Origin: Pavona decussata
Taxonomy: Eukaryota
Assembly (NCBI GenBank): GCA_977016875.1
Contig: CDRNST010000093.1
Location: 7,440,001-7,504,000 of the forward strand
Direction of reading: 5' to 3'
Length of the DNA: 64,000 nucleotides
This document shows, piece by piece, positions 512-63,566 of the stretch. The first letter of the stretch is position 1. Each line of letters begins with the position of its first letter. Below the pieces are notes generated by a model. It did not search any database. It saw only the letters and a program-made list of their open reading frames with translations, and was not told where the DNA came from. Made by a program: the position numbers and the translations under genes.

Positions 512-2211
512 ATGGGGAATATACAACTGTTGTTTATCGTTGTTTGTGCGGTGGCGTCGTCCTTGGCGTGTTCCTGCATGAAAGAGCATCCACAGAAACT
601 ATTTTGCAACGCGGACTTCGGTAAGTCTTGCAATTTGTCAGATTTAATGTTGTAAGGTCGAGAGATGGCACTTCCTCGGCCAGCTGTTATTTATAGCGCG
701 GAGCGATGGCTTCAAGTATGAAACCATTTTAACCCAATTTCAAACACAACGATTTAGAAAAATTTTGATCTACGATTGAAACAAATCTCTCATTGTAAAC
801 CATGAATTTTGGCAGTTCTTTAGTTTAAGTTAACATTGTTTTTTTTTCTTGTTCAACAAATGAAGTGTAAGACATTAACATCACGCTTGAGGAAGCTATT
901 TTTTGCCAGCCCTAAAAGCAAATTTTTGCGACAGATGATTTCACTCTACACGTAAAAAAATATCACCAAACTAACTAGATCTCATATATCGTAGCCTTCA
1001 TCTCTGTTGACAGAGCTGTTGATAACAATATTTCTTTTAAAAACAAATCAGGTTGTAGGTTAAGTATTCTATGACGCTTATATTGCACAAACCGTAAAAC
1101 GCTATGAATTTTGATTCATTTTTAAGCAACGAGGCTGGTTCATCTATTTTCTATCTTAGTGGGAAAAAAACACAAAAGTACAAAAGCTTTGCTCTTATAT
1201 ACTTCTCACAAACCACCGTAAATGGTATTAGTTTAACCTTTTCCTGTCCGAAGTCGAACACTACCAAACCTTGTATCAAGCTAATTGTCACTCTTAATTT
1301 GAGTCTTAAAATTAACCGGATGCCATTTAGTAAGGAGTGCCGTAGTTTTGCTCTCTAGAGAGTTTAAGGGTTAACGAAAAATAATCCCATCCTCTGCGCT
1401 CAAAATATCCAGATAAAGGAAATGTCTTTTAGCGACGAGGCCACAGGTCGAGTTTAAGTGTGGGAAGTTCCGGAATAACATCTTAGCATCTATTTTGTTC
1501 GGTAACTTTTGAAGTTTGATTCTTGAAAGGCTTGGTGCTGTTTATTATGCGCCGATGTACAGCTCAAGAAGCCCTCACTTGCAAAATGAAATGACGAATA
1601 TTTTAGTTGCCCACCTTGGGCGCGTAAGTCCCACCCGTGCATCCCAGGATAATCAAAAGGTGAATTATACAATGCGGTTCTGATTTTCGCCTGCCGTACA
1701 AAAACGTGCTCACCAAATCGACATTTTGCAATTTTTTTTTGTGTGTGGTCTTAATTTGGATAAGAATTATTGATATACACGTACAAGTAAATTAGGCTCA
1801 AACCTCGCTTAAATGAATGATCACATGACATCCAGAGCTCTTCTGANNNNNNNNNNNNNNNNNNNNNNNNNNNNNNNNNNNNNNNNNNNNNNNNNNNNNN
1901 NNNNNNNNNNNNNNNNNNNNNNNNNNNNNNNNNNNNNNNNNNNNNNNNNNNNNNNNNNNNNNNNNNNNNNNNNNNNNNNNNNNNNNNNNNNNNNNNNNNN
2001 NNNNNNNNNNNNNNNNNNNNNNNNNNNNNNNNNNNNNNNNNNNNNNNNNNNNNNNNNNNNNNNNNNNNNNNNNNNNNNNNNNNNNNNNNNNNNNNNNNNN
2101 NNNNTGCTTAAAAATATTATCTTTTTTTTAATCGAAAAGAAATGTGAATAGGTTTTTTAATAGCTCTTTTTTTTATATACTTTTAACTTGTAAATAGCAA
2201 ATTGTGTGGAA

Positions 2212-2294
<83 letters not shown>

Positions 2295-2914
2295 GGTTGC
2301 AAATCTCTGCGAATGCTGAGTATCAATAGTTCAAGTATTCCCCGGTGATGGCATAACGTTGGTTTCTTGTTTCCACAGCTGTACTTGCTTATGTCGAGTC
2401 ACCACCTAAAGATGAGTTCATGCCAAACAATCCTTATCCAATGCCATGGAAAGAGCAAGTTTACACAGTGAGAATTAGAGGAATTTTTAAAGGTCAAGAA
2501 GCCGTCAAAGAAACCTTTTTTGGCTCCTTTCACGCGAAGCTCTACACTCCAAAAGCGATGTCTTGCAAAGTGACCCTCACACAAGGGACATACTACGCTC
2601 TGTTTGGCAAGATCCGCGGCGGAAATCTGTACACCAGTGCCTGCGATTGGCGGGAAAAGTGGTCGCGCTTGACGTCACAGCAGCGACTTGGCCTGCGCAC
2701 GCAGTACAACCAAGGGTGTGAGTGTCCGATAAAGGTTTGCTTCACTCCAAACTGTCGACGTCTTTTCCGTGGCTGCAGTAGTGGATACGATGTCAATACC
2801 AACGATTGCAGGGCGAAATACCAACGCTGTGAAAAGCAAGTTGGCTTTAGAGGCAACAGCAAGTGTGCATGGGTCGGCAGCAAGTCTTGTGACCGAATTG
2901 CTAATTACCCGTAA
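512..2914 (+). CDS. TIMP: Tissue inhibitor of metalloproteinases, 2 coding exons join(512..620,2379..2914), ~214 aa
   Basis: Signal peptide MGNIQLLFIVVCAVASSLA, then mature N-terminus CSCMKEHPQKLFCNADF (CxC...HPQ..FC TIMP signature). GT donor at 621 and ttccacAG acceptor at 2378 join in frame to AVLAYV...YTVRIRGIFKG...LYTPKAMSC...YALFG...SACDW...W..LT..Q..GL...YNQGCEC plus a Cys-rich C-domain. Confidence 0.95.
1847..2104. other. Assembly gap (N run) in the TIMP intron
   Basis: Run of N. Confidence 1.
2213..2294. repeat. (ATT)n microsatellite
   Basis: Near-perfect TTA/ATT repeat about 80 bp long. Confidence 0.95.
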
Positions 2915-3026
2915 CAAAACTTCTTGATAAAGATGAACCTTATCATGGCATAACAAATTTATATCAAATAGCAGTAGTTGTAGTACGAGGGGCCCTTGGT
3001 TTGACCGTTTTTCTGTAGTCCGATAA

Positions 3027-3032
3027 AATAAA
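3027..3032 (+). terminator. Candidate polyadenylation signal of TIMP
   Basis: AATAAA about 110 bp after the stop, followed by T/GT-rich sequence. Confidence 0.4.
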
Positions 3033-4556
3033 CTTGATGTTGAATTTATTAGTTTAAGATGTGCTTTATCTCTTATCTTCCAAGATCCACCGACAGTGGT
3101 TGGCCGGAACAGTGCTGTTTTGTTTGAAAATACGAAAATTCTTGATTTGCAAGTGACTTCCCCTATATAACATGTAGACTTCACAAGATAGAATATATCT
3201 TTTTACGGCTAAAGTAAAATTTTCATTTTGTAAAGAAAACGCTACGTTTAATCGAATTTTTTTGTTAAATAAACTATGCTCACATCTTTATAATCCTGGC
3301 TCACATCTTTCCCTTTTTCACCATGCTGAACAGCCAGGGAGCAACTCTCTGGTGGGGAGGGGAGGGGGTAGGGGAGGCTGCTAATATCAACATAATACAC
3401 AACATGACCTAGTTGGCTGACGAACCCTCCTCGTAACTCAATGGTTGCAGCATTAGACCAGTTTTGCAGGAAGTCGTGGTTTATCTACAGTCTCAATATT
3501 TAGGCTGTTTCAAGATACATTATCGAAAAAAGCACCCTGTTGTGTTTAGGGATAAAAATCGATTCTTCGGCTTCGGTTGCCTGTCTATTGTTCTCTCGAA
3601 GAATACCGAATCTATATACAGTGTGAGATGCCTCAAGGACTACTGCACGTCCCCTTAATTTTTTTTTACTCACACTTTGGTAGCTCCTGTTGATAGCCTT
3701 TGCTTTTTGTTTTGTTTGTTTTTTTTTTTTTTGTACTTCTTATCTGCCCTTTGTTAATTCTGAAGACTTTTGACTCTTAAGCCTTTTAGAATTTTAACCT
3801 AGTTTGCACTCCTTTATCATTTCTAGTAAGAAACATCGAGACACGAGGTAGATTCGTTTTTAGAATCTTTATTATTATTCTCATTATCAGTGTCATTACC
3901 GTTATTCATTATCATTATCGTTATCATTATCAATATTAAACTTTCTGGCGTTGTGTTTCTCAACAAAGCGTATGCATGGCTCAAAAACTTAATCTGTTTC
4001 AATTCCCTGGTCTATGTTGATGTTATTAAGCTTAAATCCTTCATTTTATGACAAAAGGACTTTACATTTCTGGAAATGCAATAAAAAATTTCAAGTTTTT
4101 TTCCTCGGAAAACATGGAGATAATTCTGTCGTTGTGGTAGACCGTAGTTCAAATTTGGTTTCCCGTACGGTGTCCTACCATTTTGAATTTGACGTCATCA
4201 TATGGCTGTCTTAGGCCTATTATTACAACAAAAGAGTATGCGCTTCCTGAAAACAGACTTACTCAGTCTTGACAGTTTTATTTTTACCCGCTGTTAAAGG
4301 CTGATATGGCCAGCGAAAATTTTCATTTATTTGTGTAATGAGCTCTAGTCACATCGACTTCACATAAGATTACCCATCTTCACTAGGATTCCAGGGAGGT
4401 TTCTTCGTCCAGAGCTTTTGGTTGCTGATCAAGTCCCTTTAATGCACATAACATCAGTTAAACTAGTATGATCGTGGCCCCTTTGAACTGATGATTTGAT
4501 CAAGTGTTGTTCATTTACAAATCTGTAGACGGGAGTCTGTGAAGCTCGTCTAGGGC

Positions 4557-5114
4557 TCATTTGACTTCTTCTATTTCTAAAAACAAAAAGAGAGGAAAAC
4601 AATAACGAACGATGAAAATACAAACAGTAACAAGTGACTGTCTCGTCACCAGTCCTCGCATGCTCAGATTTAAATGAATGTCTTCCCATTAGCCTCTGCT
4701 TATACGTTACGTTCGTTTCTAAGTTCCTGTTGCACTGCTCGAACACACTTTTAAGATCAATTTAAGCGCCAGCGGAAGAAACAAATGTAATCCACAGTGT
4801 ATTGTTTAGGTACGACAGAATAAGTTGACATAAGTATAACTAATAATCAGCATTTATGCAAACATTGTTCATCTTTCCTGGATAAAAGGACGCTTTAGAA
4901 TCGGAATTTTTATAATTCCTTGAATATGAAACCATAGACAACCATTTCAGTAGTAAAACGGACTGAGTGGTCACTTCCCTAAAAGCTCAACGTTCCGCAA
5001 CTATCGAGCGGCCATGTTTAATTTCTAACTGATGTTCTAGTTTAAAATTCTAGGCTAACTTGCTATCTAGGATCCCATCGTCTCCGTCGCTTCAGGCTCG
5101 ATCATGCATCAGCT

Positions 5115-5160
<46 letters not shown>

Positions 5161-8100
5161 ATTAATAAATGATGGTTTATTAAATATCACGCAGTCACAC
5201 CTGAAAGTAAAAGCATAAATCTAGGTAAATTTGACCGCTCTTTATTACACGAAGCCTCCATGGCCCAGTGAATAAGCTCGCGCTTCTTGACTTAAACACA
5301 TGACGGAAAAAGATCAAGTTAGAGGGCATGATTATTTTTACTAGAAAACAAACCTTGATCTCGCTGGCTGTGACTCGGCGTTTCTTCAGCCTCGGGATCT
5401 GAAAGAACAGCCGTCGATGCAGAACCTATAGGGAATCACAGATTTTGGAACCGGATTAAAAATTCTTCCCCGATAACATCTTCCAGTCATCGTCATCATC
5501 ATCATCATCTTCGTCGTGTTCTTCATGATCATTATCATAAGGTTCAGTGTTTACCCTTTTCAAATCTCTTGGGAATCGTATTCATATCAGTGTGTCCCGA
5601 GACACATAAAGAATACCAAAAGAAACAATGCTCGAGAGCCTCAGTCAATTCATCCTTCACGAGCCATTGTATGGGTAAACTGGCCTGCACATTCCTGTTC
5701 CGTCTCCTTGCCTGGCTGTGCTGTTGTCTACAGCTCTCGCCGCCCAAACCTTCTTCTAATCCCCTTATTAAGCCATAGCTAATAGCGGTTTCGTTTCAAT
5801 GAACTCAACATTCAAGCCAGTGCTATTATATAGTGATAAGGTTTCTAGGCTGCAAACCTTGATCTCGTTGGCTACGAGCACGCGTGTCTTCCGGTTCAAT
5901 ATCCGAAGGGACAGCCCTCGATGTGGACCCTGGTGACGCAGAAATTTCACATGCATAAGTGGGTTAAATTCCTCATGATCAGATCGTACATATAATTGTC
6001 CCCCCCCCCCCCCCCAAGAAGAAAACAGAAGGTACTCGGAGGAAAACTGTATTAAGTAGTTATAAGCAGTGTGGCTGGAGTCACTTCACTAAACCCAGTT
6101 TAGGCAGCAAGGTTTTTTTTTTTAAAGAATTCCGTCCTTTAAACCATCGTAGTAAGTAAGCGCGTTTGGCGATATCTTTCAGTCGAATCCAATTTGGAAA
6201 TTTTTATTAGTCTGCTTACGTACTATCGATACAATATAGACCTAATTGTAAGTGTTTTCCATTTCTTTGTCTATGCAATTCTATTGATACTTAACCCTCT
6301 TTTATGTCTTGCAAGTGGTTATGGATGAAACAAACGAATGGTTAAACCTTGCAATTCAACGCAATCGCTGTCGGTTCTCCTTTCGTTCTGTTCGATGTCC
6401 ACTGGAGGAGTTGATAATTCTGATGAAACTGAAATTAAAATACTGTCAATATATTTCATTTTTATCTTTCAGTTTATCGATTTCCATTAAAAAATAATTA
6501 TATATAAATAAGTATAACAAATCAAAGCCAAAGATATTGGGGGATATGAGTTTGTAAGACCTACCAAGACGGTCAACATCATTTATCAATGGTAGACTCG
6601 TATGCACAGGTCCATTATCCTCTCGAGGGCTTGCCGCGGTTATGGTTAACACCGGACCTAAAAAAAATAGGCATTTAAGTGTAATTTTATCCGAAGGTTT
6701 GGCTGGTTACCTTCATTGGACTCAACTGAAGAAAGGACAGTCCATCACACTTGCATTTAAACAAAGTCATTTTTTTATGCCAAGGTTAAGTCCGTTACCT
6801 TCATTGGAGTCACTTGAGCTCATAAATGCGGTGGCAATAAGCAATGGAACTACAATACAGGTTCCAAAGGCTGCTGGGAAGGCAGCACGTAAAAAATCGC
6901 CGACTGATCTGTTGAAGACAAAAAATGATTCAAAAATAGAGTTTGGGACCGGCTGAACTGGTCCCTAATGAAAAGGGACATTCTACTTTGTCCATTGAGC
7001 TGATTAAAGAGGCATTATAATTGGTCCCTTGTGCTACCTGAGTGTTGCCATAAAGCCTGCGCTGCGCAACTGGCAGGATTGTTTAAGCTGTGACAAAATT
7101 TGTTCGGGGGAACTTGGGCTCAAATGTTCGTGAGCCACGAATTATCGTGGATATCTTTACTATGGAAAAAAGTACCCTGGATCTGTAGTAACCTGTCAGA
7201 AAGAAAAGAAAAACAAACACAACAAACCCAATAATTCTTACCCGTGGTCGTCGGGATAAAACATTTGGATTGCCAGAACTATTCCGCCAAGTAAAACTCT
7301 TTCCGTGCATTCAAATACTCCGGAAATAAAACAGCTGGCTTCCTGAAATGAAATGTCAAAAATATTAAGATCATGTTGTACGAGAAACAAGACGATATTA
7401 ATGTTCTCTATGAAAGCTCGAAGAGCGTCGAAAAGTGGGAAGTTAGTCTGCTTTGAGGGATAAAACGTGTCACGTTCTCGTCTGAACAGGGCAAGGAGTT
7501 TGAGCTTCTAGCTGGTAGATACAGCAATCACATGTCATATTAGTGACATCTTTTACTATCGCTGATGGGTCCCTTACCTTTTGGTTTCCAGTTACCTCCT
7601 GATACAGGGTTGGCGTTACCATGGTGAGAAGCGAGGACATGCAGGCAAATATGACCGTGGGTGCATAAACAAGAGGGGTTCGCTCTGCTGACTGTAGAAA
7701 GAACCACATTGAAGTCCCAAAAATGGCGGAGGTTGTACATAAGACAACGATCTATAAAAAAGAATGAATTAATTAACATACTTGCTACAATAAACGTGAG
7801 AGAATATAACACCAATTAAAATGAAATAGTGACAGTCAGACAGCTAAGAATGACTATAACAATGACATAAACAACTTTAGTGTCAATGGAAATAGTATTG
7901 CAGTGAGGTTAACTGGCAATGGCAATTACAATGACAATCAGGACAATGGCACTCAGAGTAACAATGGTAATGCCAGTGACAATTTCAATGGCATTGTCAA
8001 TGACAATGGCAGTGGCAATGGCAACAACAATGATAACAACCATGAAAATGGTAGCTACAATGACTTCGATGACAATATCAATGCGATATCAATAACAATT

Positions 8101-10384
8101 ACTACGGCAATGGCAGTGACAATGAGTGGTGATGGCAATGACACTGATAATCACAGAGTAATGGCAGTAGCAAAGACAATGGCAGAGGCACTATTTCCTG
8201 TTTCTTTTATGCTCGAAAGCTAGTCAGATACCCGATCACAAGCAAAATTGCCATAGAAAAAGATTTCGTTGAAGGAATGCCCATTAATCCGCATTTCGCA
8301 AAACAAAACGACCAGACAACATTTTATGAAACAAATTATTACCCTAAGTTTCAGCTTAAAAATGAAGTTTCTTGATATTATTTCTGTCACGATACGAGTT
8401 ATCACAATTATCAATGGAAAGAAGGCGACTGACTCCTGAAAAGAAAGAACAAAATAGGTTAAATTACTTGTATTATTATTACTGTAAATAATTATGAATA
8501 AGTTTCTAAATCAATAGAGCAGTAGACTTAATCAGTGATAATTACACCAAAACTACTGGGAAAACGAAACCTAAAAAAACAATTTTTATATACTTACTTT
8601 TCGTAATCGAAGAGTTTCGATGAGGTAGAGTGGGAGGAAACATTGCACAATCCGAAAAGCAATCTTTGTGAACAGGACAACAAATCCAACCTGAAGGCAA
8701 AAAAAAATTCACAAAACTGGTCTGGATTATCAAATAGAAACGGAGAAAGAAGAGATAAGAGTAAGATATATCACATATCACAAAAGTAAAGTGCTTTCCA
8801 TTAAGCTAAAATGTTCCGTTGGAAAATCTAGAAGTTTCGGTGTTAAATGGAAAGGCTTTTTCATCTGGGCGAAGAACCTTTCAGTTTCAGTTCCAATATT
8901 GCAATCTTATTGGTAGATCACGGTACTTACGTGACAAAATGGAATTCGAAATCGTGTGCAAATGGACGGGTAATTTTTGGTTACAACCGACTGGAGAGAA
9001 AAGGCACGTGGAGTACCTCCTTAGATTGTCCGTGTGTTCTGGAAAATTAAATTGTTAATGAGTGTGAGAAGACAGAAGTTGTGATAATTACTGAAATGGT
9101 TTAAGTCGCTAACCTTGTATAGTAGGGGTTCTTTGAGCCATTCGTACCACGTCAATTTTGGTCTGCGATCTAATCTTATCATCTCTTGATTCACTATCGT
9201 ACTTGGTGATGAAATGTCTGCGGTTGACCTACCACAGTTTTTGTCTTGAAAAGAAAGTAAAATATGACACCATTGTATCGATATCACTATACATTTTCCG
9301 TATCGTACTTGAAGACACCCATCGACTCATCCTTATAAATGTTATGAGGAATCAAACGGATCTGATGTGATATTATACCTTCTTCCGTCTTTCCCTCTCC
9401 ATGTTCGCCAGGCCGATCACACTGGGGTCTGGGCTCCAAGACTGTCAAATGGAACGCAAATACGAAAACGAAACCAACCGGAAGTAGAATGAGGACCAGA
9501 TACTGAAAAATAAAACAATGTAGTATTATAAGCCAATCACATGTCAGACAAAAAATTACTGGAAAGGTTAATGATGCGCGGAAAGGTTGGGTATCAAAGA
9601 CAAGCACCAGCAAGGAAAAACGACGTTCTCTGCTTCCAGGAACTTTTGACAAGTAGTTTTCGTCCCATTTCATATCCAGATCTCCCATGGTCAGCACAAA
9701 ATCGAGTGTGATCTGGGAACAAGATTAGGCTCAACCCTCCTTAAAGAGAAGGGACTCGCTCCTAGTTAGGACTTCATAGTGTAACTGAGTTGGTTAAAGT
9801 GAAACTGTTGGAAGGTACAAGTTCAATGCTAGTGCAGTTATCAAAAGGAAAGCCTCAGGATAACAGTTGATTTTAAATAAACGCAGATGCCGTTTTCGTG
9901 ACTACCACTTTCGGCTTCATTTATGAGTCACGTTATGTAACCAACTCGACAACTGTTTCAGTGCAGACCTTTTCCTTTTGGGTTTTGATGTCGGGTAACT
10001 GGCAATCATAAGTAAATTTGCACACAATCAAGGTATTATCAATAGCACTAACCGCAAATTGCTCGCTGATCTTTGAATTCACTCTGTTTTCTGTACTGTC
10101 TTGCAACAAGAACCACAGCACTATATAAAGGCATACTTTGGATAAACGTACAATGGACCTGCAACAGAAGTCGTTAGAAACAAATGTAGTTATTCGTCTG
10201 TTGTGCTCGACCAGGGCACACAAGGGTAGTCGAAAATTCAGTGGTGCACCTTTGAATCACGTCAAAAGAAAACTTTAAATTTATGTCCGTTATTCAACCG
10301 TTACCAAGATTTTGATAAACTTTTAACATCAGGGCCCAGTTGCTCGAAGCATGGTTAGCGCTAACCCGGGTTAAATACCATGAC

Positions 10385-10421
<37 letters not shown>

Positions 10422-10447
10422 CGCTAACCCGGGTTAAATGCCATAAC

Positions 10448-10481: not shown

Positions 10482-11931
10482 CAGCGCTAACCATGCTTCA
10501 AGCAACTCAGCCCAGAACAATAATACACATCATACACACTTTAACCAACTCATTCGCAATCCAAAACAGTTTGTCAGTGAATTTGCTATGCAAGCAATGT
10601 TATGCGACATAATTAATATAGAAAAACGAACGGGGGGGGGGGGGGGGGGGGAAGCCAAAACAAAATTTCAAAAGGAAAAATTTCGCACCAAAATAAGTAT
10701 GGGGCGTTCACGTCACATGTCTAAAATTAATTCCACGTTTAATGCTTCCTTATCAAAACCTTGCAAATCATTTTTTTCACATTACCGACTGAATAGGATT
10801 AAAAAAAAAATAAAATAAAAATAAGATACAGTATAAAAATATTATGACGGATTCATTCATAAATTGTGTAATGTGAAGTGTCTTGTTAAGGATGACTGAT
10901 CACTTTATAAATATATAAAAAATGCTTTTCTATTTCTTTTTGTATCTTGTTTTGTAGTTATGTGGGCGTGCAGTCCTTAAATTCTCATTGACGATTTTAA
11001 TTTAGTCTCACCAAGAGATCAAACAACCTGCTACGTTCTAGTGTAATATCAAGACATAATCAATCAAAAGTTAACGGTGATCTTTCTTTGCAACACATTT
11101 TATTTCTTTTCAATAACATGTAAGATATTATTTTGTCAAAACACGAAAACCAAACCGAGAATCAATCGAGAGAGGCTCAATTCAAGAGAATTATTTATTC
11201 AAATAACAAAGCAAATTGTTTGGTATTTCTTCGCGTTATTAAAACAGATTTGCGACAATGACCACAGTCTTACACAAATCGTTTTCATTCGTTTCAAATT
11301 TGTGGTAGAATAGTTGACAAAAAAATTTTGATTTTGTGTTTGAAAATATTGTTCGTAACTACGCGTTGTGGCAGTAAACTCACCTGGATGTTTCATAGTC
11401 TTTGTGGTTTTCTTTCTGTAGTTCTTTCATCAAGGAAGAGTAGCCCATTTCCGCGAGAGGCCAGCATGTTGACAGTAGGACCACGGGCATAAGATAATAC
11501 ACACCTAATGCTAAATTTGAACTACCAGCCCCGCAAAACAAACACGGTGTGAAGGTAAGTGGCCAAGCAAAGAGTATACCAGCTGAACCGATAACATGTC
11601 TGGCCTTCTGGATTCCGTACGCAGAAAACGGCTTCCATATTCGTCCGTCACAACCAAAGTTTATCACAAGTAAAGTTACCGCCGTAAGAATTTGAGAAAT
11701 GAAGAACAAGATTCCAACACTGAGGGGAAATAACCCGATAACATTCTGAAAATAAAGCAAGGCATAACTGTACCACACATTCGAAGTCAGGTTGTTCAGT
11801 ATATGACCTGTCTTGCATGCAATACGCTTCCTTATCGACGGTTTCGTTTCCTCAGTGATGTCATCGACGCCATTGTTGCTGGACACAGCTGTAATATCAC
11901 GAGAACTGGCCATTCTTGTCAGACTCGTCAT
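4557..11931 (-). CDS. Divergent MFSD12-like MFS (GPH family) transporter, paralog A. Core exons 11384-11931, 10053-10158, 9379-9502, 9114-9244, 8598-8690, 8343-8435, 7578-7751, 7242-7342, 6799-6908. Putative tail exons 6711-6725, 6565-6657, 6348-6428, 5858-5929, 5354-5425, 4557-4576. ~610 aa if all are used.
   Basis: GT-AG exons with consistent phase, colinear with paralog B (93/93/174-nt exons identical in size). Motifs GHILNNLTSNVWYSYALLYF, WPLTFTPC, TWYEWLKEPLLYK, FLPLYLIETL, ESVAFFPLI, VYAPTVI. Tail exons are lower confidence. AATAAA on the minus strand at ~4326-4331. Confidence 0.85.
5117..5170. repeat. (TAAA)n microsatellite
   Basis: Tandem TAAA units. Confidence 0.9.
7830..8190. repeat. 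Degenerate AAT-GGC/AAT-GAC hexamer-like minisatellite, intronic
   Basis: Recurrent aatggc/aatgac/acaatg units in the intron between exons 8343 and 7751; gives a spurious N/D/G-rich ORF. Confidence 0.75.
10332..10512. mobile_element. MITE with internal ~58-bp tandem duplication
   Basis: GGGCCCAGTTGCTCGAAGCATGGTTAGCGCT ... AGCGCTAACCATGCTTCAAGCAACTCAGCCC terminal inverted repeats; internal unit present twice. Confidence 0.8.
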
Positions 11932-25100: not shown

Positions 25101-25962
25101 TGATGCAACGCAAATAATTTTTTTTCGTCAAGCTTACCGGTACGATGGATCAAAACACGAACATTATGGGATTTAAATAACGCTTACACAATTATATTTC
25201 GTCGGCTGGTTGAGATTGCGGGATGAATATTGTTTTGAAATCAAGCAGCTATTGAAAATGAAAAAAATCACCGCGGCAAATATGGGAAAACCTTTCAGTT
25301 TGCAAGCAACGCTTGGAAGAAAGCCAATACAATGCTGTACCGCATGATATTTCACCGCCAACGATGAAAATATCGGAAATTATCGAATCGGGTTTTTTTT
25401 TTAAGCATGATTTTATAATTCTTAAAATTTCTCACCTTATTGCGCTCAGCTCCACAGCATCCTTGGGCCGTTTAGCAATATGCGGCATCAGCGATAGATG
25501 ACTGATTTCGACCATGGGCCAAAAAACGCTAAAGAAAGCCGCCAAAGCTCCATAATACGCTACCGGGACCCAACTGGGACTGTCCTTGTTGCAAACTAAA
25601 CACGGGCTGAACACGAACGGCCAAATTAACGCAATTCCAACGCTACCAAAGAAATGCCATATTTTTCTGTTGCCGTACTTTCTGCTAATTGTCTTGGAGA
25701 TGGATTTGTCGCATCCATACCCAATAAACGGGGTGGAAATAGCATCGGCGACTTGCGAGGAAAGGAAGATGTAACCGGTGCCCGTTGCGCTGATTTTGAT
25801 AATTTTGTTGAAGAAGATTATGAGATAGGTGAACCATGCCTGAATGCAGAGGTCGTTAAATACATGGCCGACTCCATAACAGATCTTTTGTTTCAATGAT
25901 GTCCTTTCTTCTTTGTGAACAAGCGGTCCGTTCTTTTTACCGCGTCCGCAAATCCAGACCAT
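16123..25962 (-). CDS. MFSD12: MFSD12-like MFS transporter, paralog B (canonical). Exons 25436-25962, 20862-20970, 20526-20610, 19675-19847, 19018-19110, 18224-18316, 17632-17805, 16971-17080, 16505-16644, 16123-16196. ~525 aa.
   Basis: YGVGHVFNDLCIQAWFTYL, SQVADAISTPFIGY, EISHLSLMP, TWKEWFKCPDFYK, NLNQSYFPMYLTDTL, IAYFPL, GCGNSIMLVTSLAMVAEIIG, SSGFVYGACALMDKLSLG resemble MFSD12. All introns are GT-AG and phases sum to an open 1578-nt CDS. Several MFSD12-like paralogs may exist, so the symbol is family-level. Confidence 0.9.
16860..16960. repeat. Short dispersed repeat (MITE-like family), also at ~21245-21382 and ~22305-22436
   Basis: Shared CCCAGTACTTT(T/C)ATAAGAAAAGTATG..GACAAGA..GGAGAATTTGTT.TTTGATATT core in three introns of paralog B; copies 2 and 3 end GGGGTTAA. 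Confidence 0.75.
19925..20125 (+). mobile_element. tRNA-derived SINE (5'-truncated)
   Basis: ATGTGGGT.GAGTTTGTTGTTGGTTCT...GGGTACTCCGGTTTTCCCCTCTCC...AACATTTCCAAATTCCAATTC body, shared with 48165-48430. Confidence 0.8.
21475..21717. mobile_element. TA-flanked palindromic MITE (Tc1/mariner-like)
   Basis: TA|CAGTGCGACACGCCTTACCTTGGCCACCC ... GGGTGGCCACGGTAAAGCGCGTCGCACTG|TA; internal AAGTTAGCCAATCAGGAT is also inverted. Confidence 0.85.
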
Positions 25963-45500: not shown

Positions 45501-48500
45501 ACCGACTTCGCTTCGTGAAAGAGACGGTGTATGATGTGTACGCCATCACGTCCGATGACAAAATTAACACTTGGAAGCACTGTATCAGGGCAATCGATGA
45601 ATATTTACGGCGACCGAAGCGAATGGCCAAGACAGGACTCAGCAAAACTGCGATGTTTTAGACTGAATGTTTTATATCTTCAGTAATTGTTAATTGTGGA
45701 TTATATCCTTGAAAATATTTCATCTTGCCTTTCAATCATTTTGCAAATCCACAAGAAAGGGGAAGGGGGAAGGGGGGGGGGGGGGAGGGGGAAGTTTGTC
45801 ATGTGCATTTTAAATTCATACGGTGCAACCCAGATGTAACGAAACCCTTTACAACGAAATTTGCAGTGTAGTATGTATGTGACGAACGATATTCTTCACC
45901 TGCTGTAACAAAATCCCATTTATTTCCAGCCGGCTAAATGTGATTTGTTCACTGTGTCTACCCACTTTTGTCTCATCCATTCTGCGAAGTTCTCAAAACT
46001 TCAAATTAATTACTAAACAAACCTTGACATAACAAAGACTTTGGTCATTTCCCCCACAAACTCGTTCTAACAGGTTTTTGTTCATACCAGATGCAATTAC
46101 AATGTAAAGATTTATTTTTTCAGTCTGTCAGCACTTTGTTATATCAGGGTTGCACTTGTTTTGTAATCAGTTTTGTCTGGTCAGCTGCCTGGTTGTAAAA
46201 ATTTGAAACCTAATGTAGTTTAGCCACAACAAACTTAAATCGCTGACACCAGAAATTCCTCAGTTCTCTAATATATTACTTCAGTGAGAAATATCCCAAG
46301 CTGAATGCTAATAAATTATCTTCGGGAAGATCTTAAATGAGAACGCCATTGTGCCAAGCTGTATTAAAAAATTAATGAATTGTTAATTTATTACCTGCAG
46401 AAACTGGATTAATTTGTCAAACTTTTTAGAAAATAATGAGCAGGGCTGGTTGTTTAATACAAAATAAAAAATATACTGAAGATTTTCATTCCATTTTACT
46501 GCTAAATGTCCCTAGCAGTCTATAGTAACAAAAGAATAGTATTTCCAGGCTTAAAACTGAAGTAGGAAGTCAAAGCAACTTCACTGAATTCTTCATTGAA
46601 AAGGTTTGATTCAAACTTTTAATCATGGCACTAATCTCATGTTAGCTAAATCTTCTTTGCAACTGTTATTTCCATCATCAAGCAAGAAATCAAACTAAAA
46701 CAACTGGGCCCTGTTCAAAATCAATTTTTAAAACATTCAAAATAATATTCACAAAGTTATGCATTACAGTACATCCGGTATAGGAAATGATGGAGACGCT
46801 TGCCGTGGACATAGTTTTTGAAAACTACTGTATACCTTCTAACAAACAAAGGCTTTGACTAATTCTGAGGGAAATCATGCCTGTTACAGACCTTTGCCAG
46901 TCGATTGTCCTTCAGTGTGGGATTCACCTGGAATACACCCAGTTCTTGCTCATACAGAGAGAGATTTTATCAATAATATTGACTGACTCGTCAAAAAAGT
47001 GTAATTTTATAACCTTTTCTCTCCTAAATATTTTACACCATTTAGGGTGCCAGGAATATTTTGTAATTAATTTGATAATGATTTTTAGCTGATTAAATAA
47101 AACCAGAATGGAAAATGAAATTTGAATATTGACTTCACTGTGTTTTGATAATGATTAATCTGCTCTTTAAAAATAAATTACCTGTATTCAACATAAAACT
47201 TAGTCTGATAGCCCAGTTAATTGTCTTTTGATTGAAGGGCTTGGCAGCATAACCAACCAATGGTACATTTTAGATTACTTTTGACAAACAACTTTGCATC
47301 TTTTCCTATGACTCTTACTAGAAAAATTGGGTTAGTTTTTGGAATAAACCCTGTTATTCAATTTTGAATCTGGTGTCTTGTATTACTGGAGGATATGAGA
47401 TTTTGGGGCAAATTTTTTCATTTGGCACGAGTCAACAGCATGCCACCACTCAATGGCGTCTAAATTTGCATATCACACTCTGGTGTGAAAGGAAGGACGG
47501 GCTTGCCCTTTTAGAGCAGAACTTCTTGTTTTCCATGTTTGAATAAATTCTTTCAACGAGTATCACGAGTATCACAAGTATCTGGACAGTGGTGAGGAGA
47601 ATATACCAGGGTCATTAAGAGGCGGAGGCCGGGGATTTCCCCCAGTTACTAAGAACGTGGCCCCCGGCTATTTTCATAGGAAAATAGAAGAAAAATAGAA
47701 CCAAAAGAAATTCCTAGCTGTTTGATTCCCCACCTACTTGTTGTATTTATCCAGCAACTTGAAATCTTAGTGACAGCCTGCATACAAGTTAATAATGAGG
47801 ATTTGAGGGTAGCTGCAATTTGGAGAATAAGTACTTGAGTGAGTGGAATAAATGAAGAGTGCAGTATTATAAAAATTATTAATAGAACCCTTGGGGAGTT
47901 TTATGCTTTATCAATACCACTGCATTTTCCTACAAAGCAACTGTTAATTTTGTGATGTTCCTTCTATTCTTACTTAAAAATTATTTTCAAAAAAATAAAA
48001 TGTTGCAGCTATGTGTATGTGTGAATTCCCAAAACATTTGGACGATTCAAGAATCTTGTTTTCTACAAACAATTTATTTACCATTTAACTTGCGATACAC
48101 GACGTTGATTTTTCTTGTGCATAACGGTCTTCTTGTTCCTCTAGTTGAGTCTTCCTTTGTATACACTGTACTCACCTTGCACCAATGTGGCCCAGGTTCG
48201 ATTCCCAGACTCGGAGTCACATACATGTATGTGGGTTCAGTTTGTTGTTGGTTCTTGTCCTTGCTACGAGAGGTTTTTCTCTGGGTACTCTGGTTTCCCC
48301 CTCTCCTTAAATACCAACATTTCCAAATTCCAATTCAATCTGGATTATTGTCAAGCACTTTATCATGAGCCTCTGGCTTGGGAGATTATGCACTCTCCTT
48401 GTTGTTGACATTAAATAAATTACTTAACTTTACTTTATTTAGGTTAAAAAAGTAAGATTTTACAAAAATAGAAATATGATACATGATTTTAAGTGAAGCC

Positions 48501-51877: not shown

Positions 51878-52559
51878 TTTGGTCACAGTGCTTTGTTTGA
51901 ACAGTAGATCATGATCACCTAAAATTTGGAATTAATCAACACAACTTGTCACTGACATTCACTACACAGCTTACGGAAGAGTATTTGGCATATTTACATG
52001 GAATGCCTGCAGGGCATGACGTGTCTAGGTTTCGCAGATTGATAAAACTACCCTTGCTTATTATAATGGAATAGTTTGGACAGATCGCGTTATGTTGTTT
52101 CCCTTGTGTTACGTTACTTATGGTTTTACCAGAAATTTCGGAAATTCCATTACAATAACGTAAGCGTATCAATGACCTCTTTTCGGTCTCACATCGTGGT
52201 TCTAAAACTGTCAAACAAAGAATGATTCAGGAACTCTCCAATTTCCACCATTTTAAATGTCGAGTGCCTCTTAGAAGTTATTCTTTCGATTTACTGCTTC
52301 AAAATGGTTAATTTTCCGTTTGAAAACGGCACACTTGAGTCCACAACATATTAACAATATGGCCGCCACAAATTTATCAGGACAATAGAATTTGATACAT
52401 GTAAAAAGAGTTAATAATAATATTGAAGGTGCAGATTTCGGGCTACCAAGAAGAAAAAAAAATAGACAAATTCGGCTAATGCGTGGTAATTTGTCACGCG
52501 ACCTGAATTGGGTATAACATGTAAACAACTTCCAAGTATTGATGAAGAAATTAATCGCC

Positions 52560-54102
52560 ATGCCTTACTACTGTTGCGCTGGAGAGTGCTATAATAGTTC
52601 TGTTCGAAAGGATATTTCCTGGCATAATTTACCACTTGATTCACCAACCATGCTTTCTGTTTGGATTAAGAAAATGAGACATGATCCTCAATATTTCAAG
52701 GTGAATCGGCATGCTAAGATATGCGGTGAACACTTTGTGACTGAGGACTTCGTGAATCCATACCCTGTAAAAAAGCGACTTAAAGATGGTGTAGTACCTT
52801 CTATCTGTGCATGGAACAAAGATAACGTTGTTCAAAAACGTTGTTCTGTTACGGAAAAGCTGGAGGCAATCAGGGCCAAGGAAGAGGAAGAAACCGACAC
52901 CGCATCCAAAGGAGAAGGAGACGTTGTCACTAACACAAACAGTGACATAACTTTAGTTTCCAGGAAAACACAGACGTTTGAGGATGACATGTGCACTACC
53001 TCTGATGACTATGAGCGAATCCCCTGCTCACATAAGTTTTCTGTAGCTCATTTGCTTTCAAAGTGCATCACACCTAAGATAGAGGAAAAATTGTTTACGC
53101 ACTTTACTGGATTCAGTTCTCATGGTGAGTTTATGAACACGCTGCAGTTTGTACTACCGAACCTAGATAGAAAACTGTTAATCTACTGGGATAGTGAAGC
53201 TAGAAAAAACAGTGTCATTGATACAGAAAGATTGTTTGATGGTGATCTTGATGACCCAGATGATATTAACGATCAAGAAGAACAAAACGAGTCTACTTTC
53301 ACACGTCCTACAGCACTTAAACTGGCAGTAGAGGATGAGTACCTTCTTGTTTTAATGAGACTTCGAATGGGTTTGACTATCATTGATCTAGGAAAAAGAT
53401 TTGGTATCAGTGAAAGTATGGTTAATAATATATTCCTTACCTGGATTAACTACCTGTATGTGACACTTGGAAGCCTCAAAATATGGCCACACAGGGATAA
53501 TATTTTGCAAAACGCACCTGTGGAATTCTTGGAAAAGTATCCGAATAACATTTGCATTATTGATGCAACTGAACTTAAGATCGAAGTTCCAAGTGCACTT
53601 AAGAAGCACAGTGAGAGTTACAGTACATACAAATCTCACACAACATTGAAATGCCTTCTTGGCGTTGATCCCAAAGGTAGAATCATGTTTGTATCTCAGC
53701 TTTATGAGGGATCCATCAGTGATAAACAAATAGTCGAGAGATCTGGTTTCTTAGATATTCTTCGTAAGAAACTAACAGTTAGTGAAATAAAGAAGGGGGA
53801 TTCTTTAATGACTGACAAAGGTTTTGATATGGATCCAGGATGAATTAAAAAAGCTTGACTTACATTTGAACATTCCCCCCTTTTTAAAAGATAAAGTTGG
53901 ATTTGAAGAAGATGATGTTGTCAAAACTCAAACAATAATTATTATTGCAAGGCATCGCATACATGTGGAGAGGGCAATCTGCAAGGTCTGTAGATTTCAA
54001 ATATTTCACTCAGTCATTCCTGTATCTATGTTTGGATGCATTAACCAAATATGGACTGTGGCTTGCTTACTTTCAAATTTTCAGAACCCGGTTCTTGCTT
54101 GA
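52560..54102 (+). pseudogene. THAP + HTH + DDE_Tnp_4 (Harbinger-type) transposase, frameshifted
   Basis: THAP finger (YCCAGEC...W...ICGEHF...VVPSI), HTH (LLVLMRLRMGL..DLGKRFGIS), catalytic motifs IIDATE / TDKGF / HVERAI; a 4-bp GGAT insertion near 53831 shifts frame between D2 and E. Confidence 0.92.
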
Positions 54103-54571
54103 TAACACAACAATTGCAATTCAATTTTAAAACTTTTTTCTTAAGGTGCAGAAAATAAAGACAGCACTCCTTTTCTATGTAACACATTTTCACTAGTGTG
54201 TAATTGACTACCTTTTTTTAGACACTAGTCATTATTATTTTATGTAGAGGAGGGAGGGAAAAAAGACAAGTAGGCAAAAGTATTTTTAGAAGAATGGTTA
54301 GAGTAGGGACCCTATTATTCTAATAAAGAAATAGGGGTCATCTTTTTTTGGCTCTGCCACGGGACTTGGGCTTGCAGTTTTTTTATCTTCCAAAAAAGAG
54401 AACCTCCTTTCCCCTGTTCATAAGTAATGACCAGTTCCTTACCGACAGAGAAACAGTTCTTGTCATAATAATATTACTAGTTTTGTGAGTTATAACCACT
54501 TTCAGCAAATACTGTTACTATTTACTTCTTGCATTAATCAAAGTGTACTTAAGAATAAGAGTCAGGTGTGG

Positions 54572-55958
54572 TTAACTAAAAAAGTAATGGTAATCATCGT
54601 TTCGTGAACAGCTTTCAACTGTCTTTGCTTGCACAGCAATAAAAGGAAGGGCATAATTGAAAAAGAACTTCTTGAATTTAGGAAGAAGCTTGTTTTCCCA
54701 GTAGTCAGGATCAAAATGGATTCTGTCTACACACATTTCATTCGAGTCAGACAAGTAAACACAAAAGTCACACCATGGTAAACCAGTAAGGGCCAACTGT
54801 CCTTGTACTTGGGTAAAATAGGAGTGACTTTTCTTAAGGTAAAAATTAGCCCCACTTTTTTCAATATAAAAGGCTGGGTCTTCTGCTGCTTGATCAATAG
54901 TATCTCCTTGTTTGGAAAAAGGACACTTGACCTCCAGCAATCCGTATTTACTGCTTGATGATGGATCAAACACTTTCCCATCTGGGGTGGCACCAAGGAA
55001 AGGAAATTTTGGATGTTCAGAAATCCCAGCATCAAATACTGCAAAACCTGGCACTTTTTGTTTCATGTTTTTGGAATATATTGTTAGTGCAATCTTCTCC
55101 TTTCCCTTGCCATGTGTAACAGCCCTCACATTAATATTTTGACAAATCTTTCGCACAAAAAATACTTTTCAACATTGAATCTGAGGGCCTGTGGATTCTT
55201 GAATATACTTTCCCAAAATTGAATGCAGTGAGCCTGGTCTTATGCTGATTCAGCTATTCAGATGATTCTCCTTGTAGGACTGTTCCCCTCTCTAAGACAT
55301 GAGATTCTCTTTCATTTATGATTAGATTGTCAACAAAAAAAGCAGACAGTTCAGCTTGATTCAGCACATCCAGGTCAGACAAATCAAACACAGTATTATC
55401 TGTGATACAATTTTCCCTTGTGTGGTTACAAGCAAAGGTTATGTTTGGTAGACCAAAGTCTTGTAATATTGGTATGTCAGGCAAGCACCAAGGGTAACAT
55501 TGGACCAAATATTGTATTCATTAATAAACCTGATTCTTGATCGCTCAATAGATAAGAAAATGGAGGGGTGTTTCCTTTCCTTTTAAAAAGCTAACTTGGT
55601 CCATCAAATGGTGCATTAGAAGTCCTTTCCTTAGAGCAGGACCTCTTGCATCATCCTTTAACATCAATACTAAATAGTGCGGGTCTTCACTCTTTTGTAG
55701 CGATCGATAGCAGCGAGCTTTTACGTAAAAAACACCAGATCCCTCACACGTGTAGATATCATAGGCATATCCTTCACGAAAGAACTTGTAGCTTTTTTCT
55801 CCTGCATTTTTCTTTCCTCCCTGACCAAGCCAGTCAGAACAAGTCAAAAGACTAATTTTCGGGAAATTTGTCAAAGTTTTTGACCTATTTCTAGTCTCAT
55901 AATACAAACACGAACAACACTGAACATGGCTGCGACAACAAATGCATGGGGCCGCCAT
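54572..55958 (-). pseudogene. YqaJ-like (lambda exonuclease-fold) nuclease ORF of the transposon, fragmented
   Basis: FLGATPDG...GLLEVKCP...YFTQVQGQLALTGLPWCDF; N-terminal YKFFREGY...VKARCYRS. In-frame stop at 55254 and frame breaks split it into three ORFs. Confidence 0.9.
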
Positions 55959-57068: not shown

Positions 57069-57289
57069 ATTAACTGTCTGCCTTACAAGGTCATTTACAA
57101 TGAACTGCGTCAAATATCTCGATTGGGTCCTCTGTACGCGCTAGACTATAAATAGCAAAACTGCTCCGCTTACAAGCTTGCTTTTGACACAAAATGTGTT
57201 TTTCTCTGGAAAGTAATCTTGTGCTGGAATTCAAGCTTATATGAAGCAAATACAGAATTCAGCACGATTCAGCACCCAAATGAAGCTCG

Positions 57290-57660
57290 CGCACATCCGC
57301 GCACATGGCAAAAAATACCGAGAACTGAGCTTACCGCACGCACCAAATTTGAGCATAGCCAGATAAACGATTTAAACATTTTTACAAAAAGATTCCGCTG
57401 CTTATTTAGTACTTTACCTACAAAGTAATTTACTAGTTATATTTACCGGGATATGGAAAGCTCTGTACAGCTCCGGAAAGGCCAAATTCAACGAGTCGAA
57501 ACTGTCACGCTGTCAACCGAACTGAGCAAAGCAACCAAGCGTTTCACAGGAAGTGACGTAACGACTATGCGCTATGCTATCCCCAAAAAGCGCTGGACAA
57601 AGAGCGGGAAGGTACTCAATGGTTTCCATTGAAATGATCGACCTTTCAGGTAAGTTTTAA
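57290..57660. promoter_or_regulatory. Putative bidirectional promoter between the RRM gene (-) and synapsin (+)
   Basis: CpG-rich island with ETS+CRE composite CAGGAAGTGACGT (~57547-57559) and CCGGAA. Divergent splice donors: minus-strand GCG|GTAAGC at ~57334 and plus-strand CAG|GTAAGT at 57650. Confidence 0.55.
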
Positions 57661-58926: not shown

Positions 58927-59108
58927 CAGTGGAACCTCTCCTTACGGACACCTCTTTAATACGGACACCTCTCTATTACGGACAGTTCACTTGGTCCCTG
59001 AGAGACCGAAATCCATATACTTAAAGCCTACTTCTCTAAAACGGACACCTTTATAATGCGGACACTTATCCCTGTCCCCGTGGTGTCCGTAATAAAGAGG
59101 TTCGACTG
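58927..59108. mobile_element. pogo/Tc1-like MITE
   Basis: CAGTGGAACCTCTCCTTACGGACACC ... GGTGTCCGTAATAAAGAGGTTCGACTG|TA with repeated ACGGACAC motifs. Confidence 0.82.
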
Positions 59109-60813
59109 TATTTGTTTGTTTACGTACCAATTCATGTTTTAGAAATCCCTATTTTACAAATTCACTCCATGTTTTGCCAATCCACTCCTTGTTTTACAAA
59201 TCCATCGTTTACAAATCCAATCCTTGTTGTACAAATCCGATCCAGTTCCTTTGTTTAGAATACGCCGAACACCTCTACTCCCCTAGTACCCTATCCGCTA
59301 AAAATTACGATCAGGTTATTTCATTAAACACAACGAAGGCAGTAAAACGGATGGAACGAGACTAGAGACGCTTCTTTGGTATGCAACCCAAGTGAAGATT
59401 AAGGTTATCTTCATGTCGAAAATGATTTCAGTTTTCTTTCATGAATGTGTGAAATAAAATAACTGTCAACAGCCGATGGCGCAAAGAAACAATAGCGACT
59501 TCGAATATCTTTCTTGCTGTTGTTGTTTTCAATGCTCGTATCGTGTCTCCAGGATTGTTGTTGTTTATTTTTTGTTTTCTTTTTTTTTTTTATTTTTAAA
59601 TCTTCTAATTGCCTTTTTTTTAATATGAGGAATAGGGCAAATTGAGATTTTGAGCCGGTCATCATAAATCTAGCCTATAATTATTTTAAACCCAACGAAA
59701 AAAAAAACCTGAAAGTTTGTAAAAAAAAAAGTTCAAAAAAAGTTTTAAGCTGGGAAAAAATTCCTGAATTTGTGCCGGTCGGGAAACCAAGAATATTCGT
59801 GTGATTGTTTGGTTTTTAAGACCCCATCTGTAGAAAATTGGCAGATCTTTGTTTAAAACATCACTTTTTGAATAATTATCAGCGTCGTTATATTGTCTTG
59901 AACATGATGAACCCAGCGGCTTGTTTTGAAACCGCTGCAGGATTATTTTGCCAGTTAAAGCTCAAATGAAGTTATTTTTGAGGTTAAAATAATTGAGCTG
60001 TCTATAAACTGACCAATGACGGACCCGCATATTAGGCTTGAGAAATGTCGTGATCCGTATTCCGCTGTATTCACGCAGTTTTCAAAATGTTTTGTTGTTC
60101 AAAACGAGTTCTACTTCCTGCCAGACATTGTACAAAGACCAGCTTAAAAATTACTGTGATATATAAACAAATACAATACAAAATTATAATAACCATGTTA
60201 AGTGGCGAAAACCTACTACATGCATAGTTTAAAAAGTCTTTTTGTGTTCGTCTAAATGAAGCGGATACCTTTTAAAATAATCCATACTTCGCAAAAGAAT
60301 CAGAAATCGTTTTTGCCTGACTTCGCCATTAACCTAACAAAAGCCAGCAAAATAGGCTTGTTTTGATTGAAGCCGAAAACAAAAATGTTCAATCTTGTTC
60401 GGTATTAGAATATGCAATGAATTGAACGCCATGGTCAATTGGTCGGTAAACAATGCAATTGTCCTTGGGCGATTTTTTTGACGAACAGGTGTCTCGGAAG
60501 TGTTCCTTGAATATTTTAAAAATATACAAGAAGGTTTGTCATTCCGCGTCGCTGAAGAAATCTCTTGGGTAATCCATTGACCTAAAAACCAACTTTCGCG
60601 AGTTTAGTGGTTATAGTAATTCTGCGCTGACAACAGCCTTCAGATTTTCAACTCAATCGGCGCATAGAACCAATAGGAGAAATCCCTGATTGTTACAAGA
60701 AGAAAAATACGGCCTATTTATCAGCTCGAACCGTATGTTTCGAGGAATTCTTGGAGTGATCTTAAACCTTCAAGCATTTCAAGCAAACTTCAAGAGTTTG
60801 GAGCCGTGAAAAC

Positions 60814-63566
60814 ATGGAGTTTTTGCAGAAGTTGAAGATTTCCGGTGGTGTAAATCTAAGCAACCTACGCCCTTCAAGTTCACGCGACAATGAACGAACA
60901 ACAAGCACTGCTTCCCCAACGAGCTCGCGACCCGATTCAAAAGAGGATGTTAGTTTGCCTCCCAGAGGATCGCCTGCCGCCAAAAAGATGAAAATACTGT
61001 TAGTTATTGATTCACCTGATACAGATTGGTAAGCGAAACAAATATAAATTTTACCCGAGTATAAACTATAACATATAAAGGTTCCGTTGTTAGCATATAT
61101 ACTTTATCACCTTATTTTTCCTTGGTATAAATTAAAAAATAGCAGCATGATCGAATCAGTGGAAGATCAAAGATTGCAAAATCTTCCTGCACTATAATAC
61201 CACCCGTTTGTCAATTAACAAGCTAAGCCTTCAAATCGAATGAAGGTTTGCCCGAAGAACTAAACTTTTGATCACTAGAATTCTCCTCGAGTTAATTTAT
61301 GATTTCTACAATAGGAGATTTTCCCGCGCGCGAACGTTACAAGAAAGTCACAATTTTATTCAAACGGTTCTTGTCATAAACACGGTCTCAACAACAAAAT
61401 AATTAATACACAATACGAGCAAGCTTATAAATCAAGCCACTCGTTTATCATGACCATTATTCGTGAAGAATTTCACAATTCTTTTTAACCGCGTTCATCG
61501 TCGCTAGCTCACCTTCGAAATTTACTGAGGTAGCTATTTAACTAATAGCTTCATTGTTTTCCAACAGGGCTAAGATTTTCAAGGGACGGAAACTTCATGG
61601 CGGTGTTTATGACATACGGGTAGAGCAGGTATTTTAGTCGCTTATTGTCACATTATTTTTGCTCTGAATGCCCAGTACCTTAATGCAGAAATCCATATCA
61701 AGATTACACGCAGAGAAATGAGTGTCCCCAGACAAAACCGTTTTGTTTATCTTTTATATTGAAATCTCGCCTTGAGAAAATTTGCATTTTATTTATGAAT
61801 GAAGACAGGAAACATGGCATCCTCGGGTTCAACTGCGGAACGTTCAAACACAGGAAGGGTCGTTTCAAAGTGGCAATTCCCCACGTCGGTTTTACACCCA
61901 TGATTTTCGCAGCCAGCGGTTTTCGCTCGTCCATTATGTGGTTGTGATGGTAAAGCAAATAGAAAATGCCCTCAAGAAATTATCGCAATATGGTTAGATC
62001 AGTATGCGAGTTTAATAAGTGTTTGCATCGACAAGCATCAAAAATTTGCATTTACAAAACGCCGCGTTAATTGCAATCCTTGCTAAAATGTTTAACATTT
62101 CAGCTCTTTTTTCGCCATCTCAGCGTAATGTGCTTGTTCAGAGGAAAATAATGTTATTGGAATTTAGATATTAAGTTTTTAATCGGTTTAAACGGCTAGA
62201 ATTTGAGCTGAAGGAAAAAGTACATTTTTAGTCCCGTGAAAAATTTATTAGACGCAAAGCATTCGCGCGTATTTGCATGTTTTAAGGAACAACAGTGGAG
62301 AAATTACGAGAGCAAGATACGAGGACATACAACTATGGTTTTGAATTACTTTTGTGTTCATTACGCGAGGAAAAACAACAAAAAATGGTCCTTGCCGAGG
62401 TTTATCGTTTTGTCGACCTTTTTGATAGTATACGCCCTCGAACTTTTCGTCTTCTTGTGGTTTCGCCAAAATATTGAATTATTTTGAAGCTGTTTTTATG
62501 TCTGCTGGTCAATTTTCTGTGTATTTTAATTTTAATTTTAATTTATATTTAATTGCTCTACTCGTTTTCATCATTAATTTATTTCACGGTCGGATAAAAC
62601 ATTATCTTTGATCTTACGCATTAACAAAATATTTCTTGTATATCGTTTTGGAATTCGAAAATCAAAACTTCTGTTTTAATACTTTATAAGAGTAAACTTA
62701 AATTTATATAGTTTTGGCTTTGGCTATAAAATCCAACCAATTTGAGAAATAATGCTAATAAAGAGCGCTTTTATCAATTTTGTTGGGGTGTTCCTTCCAA
62801 ACACATTCACTGGTTTTTACCAATTAGAGAAAGTCAGTTTTCAGTATGACGTTTTCCCGCCATAATGACCAGCCAGCCGTCACTTTTCCCGCCAAAATGT
62901 GCGGAGTCGTCAAAGATCCTACAGTGGAGCACAAAGGACCCTTGGCGAGATATTCTTGAATTTCGTCTCAAGTGCAGTTTAGTTTTAATAAAAACACAAG
63001 TAGCGATTTTCGCAAAGTAGTTACAAATCCCCTCGTGTAGGTTCTTGTTCGGCTTTATTTTATTATTTGAAAAAAAAAGAGATTCTAAGAAATCCGTTTT
63101 TAAATACACAGTAATCCATCTGCAGTTGCCTTCGTTCTCTATGTACTTGCCCTCATGTAAAGGCGTATGTTTCGAAAACCTACGCTTTCTGTCCGTTGTA
63201 ATTGTCGACGTTTTTTTTTCTGTTTTTGCGTTTACAGTTGGAGACACTGTATAAAACATGCTCGTTTTGTCTTGTACACATAAGCTGTAATCTTCTGTTT
63301 CAAAAACATCGCTTTGTGGCGGCATCGTGCGTTTTCAATTTCTAGACTGAAGTCCAAACCGGTTTTGGTCGGGGGAACCGAAAATCCCGTTTTATTCGTG
63401 TATGTGTTGGTAATCCTCCGAAAATTTATTACTGTTATAACCGTGTGTATGACTTTCGTTTTCTTTGCGTACAGGCCGAGTTTGGAGACTTGAATCTCGC
63501 CTCGTATTCAGACAGTGGTACGATGGTTGACATTCAGGTCTATCGTGAGGGAACCGTCGTAGTCAG
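60814..63566 (+). CDS. Syn: Synapsin, 5' partial: exons 60814-61028, 61568-61628, 63475-63566; continues beyond the window
   Basis: Spliced translation ...KILLVIDSPDTDW|AKIFKGRKLHGGVYDIRVEQ|AEFGDLNLASYSDSGTMVDIQVYREGTVVVR matches the start of synapsin domain C (vertebrate [39 protein letters not shown]). Canonical GT-AG sites with consistent phases. Confidence 0.95.

Follow-up and report, generated by a model that had tools for sequence, protein, structure and literature searches.

Three vertebrate TIMP genes lie antisense within an intron of a synapsin gene (TIMP1 in SYN1, TIMP4 in SYN2 and TIMP3 in SYN3), and a further one, TIMP2, is un-nested. In a 64-kb stretch of the coral Pavona decussata (C93:7440001-7504000 of the plus strand, in a 602 Mb assembly), hereafter called the window, a TIMP gene designated W and the start of a synapsin gene occupy the same strand. 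The distance from the W stop codon to the synapsin ATG (position 60814) is 57.9 kb. The original prediction for this stretch, which had placed the TIMP about 58 kb upstream of the ATG on synapsin's strand, proved accurate in this respect and in its coordinates. It also proposed that TIMP and synapsin are linked but not nested here, and that this might be the linkage from which nesting arose or, alternatively, the result of local duplication or inversion of a copy from a nested locus. If true, the first of these proposals would have uncovered the ancestral pre-nesting state of a very well-known conserved nested gene pair, but it does not hold. Rather, the window very probably covers the upstream two thirds of a synapsin-TIMP neighbourhood that is conserved in scleractinians and in which W is a fourth, linked paralogue beside a nest of three copies.

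Antisense TIMPs in synapsin intron 5

The first three synapsin exons are located near the end of the window, and the gene continues well past it (Table 1). Matches to PF02078 were obtained for synapsin exons at C93:7503460 and 7503975, and PF02750 (Synapsin_C) matches five exons on the plus strand from C93:7504945 to 7543267, the first at 7504945-7505052 and the others from 7538878 onward. Exon mapping places a large intron after the fifth coding exon. This intron 5 (C93:7505047-7538919) is 33,873 bases long, is in phase 0, contains no N, and is flanked by the residues ...AYYPNYKEM on one side and LITPKFPVVVKVGH... on the other. It begins only 1,047 bases beyond the end of the window. All real synapsin profile matches are on C93, which is consistent with a single gene. 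A candidate second synapsin at C169:1827131-1827364 (PF02078, E = 7e-4) was dropped, as BLAST detects no similarity between it and the real synapsin exons.

The original prediction had pointed to the downstream synapsin introns as the place to look for a TIMP, and a profile search of the genome located three copies precisely there. Six Pfam TIMP matches were recovered, a number that is a lower bound: W in the window, three nested copies on C93 (A, B and C), and two further, unlinked ones, on C148 and C233. The nested copies are antisense to synapsin and are arranged in the order C-B-A on the minus strand, with the nearest beginning 2.4 kb past the window end. Each has two exons, the first of which ends with ..F/G followed by a gtaagt donor as in W, and the phase-1 intron position is the same in W and in the nested copies. 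The classic nested synapsin-TIMP arrangement is present here, in three copies. The description of the genes as linked but not nested is true of W, whereas for the locus as a whole it reflects the point at which the window stops.

Corals from other genera carry the same locus. The Porites harrisoni annotation (GCA_040938025.2) shows three TIMPs on the opposite strand within the extent of synapsin, the first two of which are of the C and B types according to tBLASTn. In Stylophora pistillata (LSMT01000005.1), synapsin encloses four TIMPs on the opposite strand, namely C, B, A and another A-like copy, in that order. A 1.87 Mb ENA contig from an independent assembly (ERZ26692694:ctg14905) carries orthologues of W (79% identity to the gene of the window species), synapsin exon 5 (94%), A (85%), B (87%) and C (93%), in the order and orientation observed here, and one further ENA contig carries the same C-B-A triplet. 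Among the TIMP proteins, the closest named relatives are from scleractinian corals, with copy C being 81% identical to its counterpart in Orbicella faveolata and 77% identical to that in Porites harrisoni. Other close relatives come from Oculina, Stylophora, Montipora, Desmophyllum, Acropora and Pocillopora, all of which bears out the earlier assignment of this DNA as probably cnidarian. A search of the open literature for a description of the coral synapsin-TIMP locus found none.

The upstream copy W is part of this conserved neighbourhood. Its orthologue on ctg14905 is separated from synapsin exon 5 by about 80 kb. In Stylophora pistillata, the W-type TIMP (XP_022788034.1) is on synapsin's strand, roughly 95 kb or less upstream, and an MFS gene on the opposite strand comes after it, as in the window. 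Thus, the position of W upstream of synapsin, on the same strand and beside an MFS transporter gene, has been kept in at least three species. The original prediction had reasoned that a lack of linkage in related cnidarians would reduce the observation to chance proximity, but the linkage is seen both in Stylophora pistillata and on ctg14905.

The linked copy W and its possible origins

W is an intact gene according to direct reading, Pfam and a list of open reading frames, and its product is predicted to be secreted. Exon 1 encodes a signal peptide that is followed directly by the N-terminal Cys-X-Cys (MGNIQLLFIVVCAVASSLA and then CSCMKEHPQKLFC, with the cleavage site placed by eye), and the residues between the hydrophobic leader and the splice donor are CSCMKEHPQKLFCNADF. 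The first cysteine of TIMPs is the residue that binds the protease zinc. The codon split by the only intron is restored at the junction (g + ct = Ala), and the frame is kept. Pfam and homology searches were run on single exons, one at a time; exon 2 matches the TIMP profile (PF00965) over positions 37-183 with 75.9 bits (4.5e-21; cut-off 23.1 bits), and exon 1 covers positions 2-19. The resulting protein has 214 amino acids and 14 cysteines (3 + 11), and both of its domains align to TIMP-2 and TIMP-1 chains. Its cysteines match those of nested copies A and C and of other coral TIMPs in the alignment, and W may work as a secreted metalloproteinase inhibitor. In addition, a 1.1-kb Logan contig from another relative encodes an intronless W-type protein of 214 amino acids that is joined exactly at the splice site modelled for W. 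A long (ATT)n microsatellite is present at about 2215-2295 in the W intron, just past an assembly gap.

In maximum-likelihood trees, the W, C, B, A-like and U1 proteins each form a well-supported clade (U1 and U2 being the unlinked copies on C148 and C233). W belongs to an orthogroup present throughout Scleractinia. The W clade, which has 96% support in the Shimodaira-Hasegawa-like approximate likelihood ratio test, includes proteins from Acropora, Pocillopora/Stylophora and Desmophyllum, and the orthologues of W in other coral families share 45-79% identity. Because the clade holds proteins from all of these corals, the tree indicates that W is an old linked paralogue that predates the split of their families, and the event behind it is ancient rather than recent. 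The ratios of nonsynonymous to synonymous substitution rates (dN/dS) relative to the ERZ26692694 orthologues are 0.45 (W), 0.21 (A), 0.30 (B) and 0.11 (C). All four copies are constrained, W the least, and these values indicate that W is under purifying selection. Placement of this species within Scleractinia differs weakly between the W tree and the C tree.

It can be taken as established how the genes are built, that the nest exists, that the linkage is conserved and that the paralogue is old, and the origin of W is the part that must be weighed. We infer that W arose by local duplication and inversion of a nested TIMP. An ancestral nested copy would have been duplicated locally, with inversion, to give W before the scleractinian radiation. 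This ancient event is the most economical account because the position of W is conserved and random linkage has a low probability. By our own arithmetic, three non-nested TIMPs in 602 Mb would include one no farther than 100 kb from synapsin with a probability of about 0.001. The finding of nested antisense TIMPs downstream also favours the second of the two proposals made originally, that of a copy derived from the nested locus, although the tree cannot show that W came from the nest.

Several points weigh against this interpretation. The tree supports W as a clade, but W, U1, U2 and the nested group, which consists of C and A/B, are connected by branches that are weak or unresolved. Linkage is the evidence for a nest origin of W, because the tree places W neither with nor inside the nested clades. 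Furthermore, the genomic total of six TIMPs is a minimum, and the equivalence of the host intron to that of vertebrates, although consistent with the data, is judged from exon count and published statements.

These points are most relevant to the possibility that W is an independent TIMP paralogue, comparable to vertebrate TIMP2, which came to be near synapsin by translocation or chance and was then kept there without any local duplication. The trees lend this idea some help, since W is not grouped with A, B and C and instead falls weakly on the side of U1 and U2. Likewise, the five non-nested TIMPs on other scaffolds in Nematostella show that independent copies do occur. However, such a copy would have had to reach the vicinity of synapsin against the odds calculated above, and the linkage and the neighbouring genes have been kept in three species. 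The intron position and phase that W shares with the nested copies also speak for a common source, albeit this intron may be ancestral to all TIMPs. On balance, an independent origin seems rather improbable.

Errors in the assembly could also place unrelated genes side by side, and two gaps (1847-2104 and 34264-34404) between the start of W and synapsin would allow an unrelated TIMP contig to have been misjoined at one of them. The first gap is inside the sole W intron, where the flanking exons splice in frame, and the contig L007 from a related species (72-90% DNA identity) is collinear with window positions 1-8540 on both sides of this gap, with similar spacing. Moreover, a W-type TIMP and the nest are present on a single contig or scaffold, in the same order and orientation, in both the ENA assembly and Stylophora pistillata. 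A misjoin that created the linkage of W to synapsin appears very unlikely because the overall linkage recurs in independent assemblies, and an artefact of this kind is given only a very slight probability.

Two further explanations have practically no likelihood. Recent escape of W, in which a young duplicate of a single nested TIMP would have been shifted upstream in this species by a recent duplication or inversion, might be suggested by the linkage and two-exon structure common to W and the nested TIMPs, but W shares only 28-38% identity with A, B and C and has orthologues in other coral families that form a supported clade with it. The pre-nesting ancestral state, in which TIMP and synapsin would be mere neighbours here and nesting would have come later in bilaterians, fits the window by itself, which has no TIMP inside synapsin, but is contradicted by the three antisense TIMPs in the expected synapsin intron, by the same nest in Porites and Stylophora, and by the nesting already published for Nematostella (PMC2825198).

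Comparison with known synapsin-TIMP loci

With antisense TIMPs inside a synapsin intron, the coral locus is an ordinary case of a known arrangement, slightly expanded, and cnidarian nesting has already been published for Nematostella. In Nematostella vectensis, scaffold 99 carries NvSyn with NvTIMPI nested in it, and other scaffolds carry five independent TIMPs (Candiani et al. 2010, PMC2825198). The coral resembles this system in having an antisense TIMP within a synapsin intron of the C-domain region, further TIMPs elsewhere in the genome, and a synapsin that lacks a clear A domain (none is evident in coral exon 1). However, one nested TIMP has been reported for Nematostella compared to three here and four in Stylophora, and no linked TIMP upstream on the same strand has been reported from its fragmented assembly.

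Several tandem TIMPs in one synapsin intron are likewise known from Ciona, which has two, and from sea urchin, which has ten, and the position of the nest is conserved (PMC2825198). In contrast to these animals, which are reported to have no independent TIMP, the coral combines a nest of multiple copies with TIMPs outside the nest, of which one is linked. Its triplet is also old and orthologous across coral families.

The antisense orientation of the nest is shared with vertebrates. As a TIMP outside the nest, W is similar to vertebrate TIMP2. To our knowledge, TIMP2 is unlinked to any synapsin gene, whereas W is linked to synapsin at a distance of about 60-95 kb upstream. Vertebrate TIMPs also differ in having five exons and 12 cysteines, compared to the two coding exons and 14 cysteines of coral TIMPs. 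By count, the coral host intron, which follows the fifth coding exon, corresponds to the intron 5 of mouse Syn2 that houses Timp4 according to the title of Rahkonen 2002 (cited in PMC2599898), and it is consistent with the published conservation of the nest position.

The coral data add an old, orthologous scleractinian nest of three to four copies in intron 5, a conserved linked TIMP upstream, and a nested clade without the first cysteine. Together they sharpen the picture of how the locus evolved, in which local duplications recurred while the host intron stayed fixed, and they provide a natural test case for asking whether constraint acts on nesting or simply on linkage.

Copy B, neighbouring genes and mobile elements

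Nested copy B lacks the N-terminal Cys-X-Cys (Cys1 and Cys3) and two partner cysteines, and retains the others. The same loss is seen across the whole B clade in other corals (e.g. Oculina patagonica P0031; also P0036, P0009 and P0034). In TIMP-1, the disulfide pairs concerned are C1-C70 and C3-C99, and canonical TIMP inhibition requires Cys1. Because this residue has been lost, B is probably a non-inhibitory protein with a TIMP fold.

W has been retained 60-95 kb upstream with its MFS neighbour in at least three species, one of which belongs to another family (Stylophora, Pocilloporidae). It is conceivable, though on present evidence unlikely, that selection keeps TIMPs in cis with synapsin beyond the nest and that the nested B clade, devoid of Cys1, Cys3 and their partners, has a non-inhibitory role. 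If so, a shared regulatory block, rather than residence in an intron, would be the conserved feature.

The unlinked copies have peculiarities of their own. U1 (L010:4503-5402, C148) carries an insert of about 120 residues close to where the N-domain begins, and many corals, among them Desmophyllum, have orthologues of it. Within its open reading frame (ORF), U2 (L011:5198-5593, C233) ends after the N-domain.

Table 1. Positions of genes, gaps and other elements at the synapsin-TIMP locus. Positions are those of the window unless preceded by a contig name.
Feature	Position	Strand	Details
TIMP W exon 1	512-620	+	ATG, signal peptide, Cys-X-Cys, ..FCNADF + 1 base (phase 1); gtaagt donor at 621
TIMP W sole intron	621-2378	+	phase 1; holds assembly gap 1847-2104
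TIMP W exon 2	2379-2914	+	cag acceptor; rest of N-domain and C-domain; 11 Cys; stop TAA 2912-2914
MFSD12-like transporter copy 1, first coding exon	11380-11931	-	weak MFS_2 match
MFSD12-like transporter copy 2, first coding exon	25432-25962	-	MFS_2 3.6e-14; Atlas clusters named MFSD12 score 0.99
Second assembly gap	34264-34404		outside every detected coding exon
Q/P/S-rich repetitive ORF, 855 amino acids	36100-38667	-	without Pfam family
BEN-domain ORF	44828-45661	+	PF10523 2e-08
Harbinger-type transposase, two adjoining ORFs	52539-54102	+	THAP + HTH_Tnp_4 + DDE_Tnp_4 (Pfam)
YqaJ-like exonuclease-domain ORF	54572-55156	-	mobile-element remnant (Pfam)
Synapsin exon 1	60814-61028	+	MEFLQK...LLVIDSPDTD + 2 bases
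Synapsin exon 2	61568-61628	+	AKIFKGRKLHGGVYDIRVEQ
Synapsin exon 3	63475-63566	+	AEFGDLNLASYSDSGTMVDIQVYREGTVVV + 2 bases; PF02078 2.3e-07
Synapsin exon 4	~C93:7504053	+	past window end
Synapsin exon 5	~C93:7504945-7505046	+	past window end
Nested TIMP A, profile match	C93:7506488-7506985	-	Pfam TIMP
Nested TIMP B	C93:7513855-7516200	-	exon 2 = L012:3855-4400, minus strand
Nested TIMP B, profile match	C93:7513900-7514406	-	Pfam TIMP
Nested TIMP C, profile match	C93:7528654-7529205	-	Pfam TIMP

The genes located between W and synapsin match most of those originally named (Table 1). The MFSD12-like gene, represented by two first exons, and the BEN gene were both recovered, whereas an RRM gene was not. 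The MFSD12-like copies are a diverged tandem pair whose first exons share 32% identity. No Pfam RRM match was found among the exon-sized ORFs at 38.7-44.3 kb, including ten minus-strand ORFs at 39.4-44.3 kb, and scans for the RNP-1 motif likewise gave none. A stretch resembling the tail of an RRM is present near 41.8-41.97 kb on the minus strand, as judged by eye only. The supposed RRM gene is probably the 855-amino acid ORF, which is built from Q/P/S-rich repeats of about 45 residues (...NSQEPKYF.DQGNRSFGQQGLL...TDLPKEVQ...).

Mobile elements have also left traces at this locus. Remains of such elements occupy positions 52539-55156, between the BEN ORF and synapsin. In intron 5, an intact ORF2 of a long interspersed nuclear element (LINE), encoding 1,266 amino acids with AP endonuclease, reverse transcriptase and zf-RVT domains, is located between nested TIMPs B and C (C93:7518685-7522485, minus strand).

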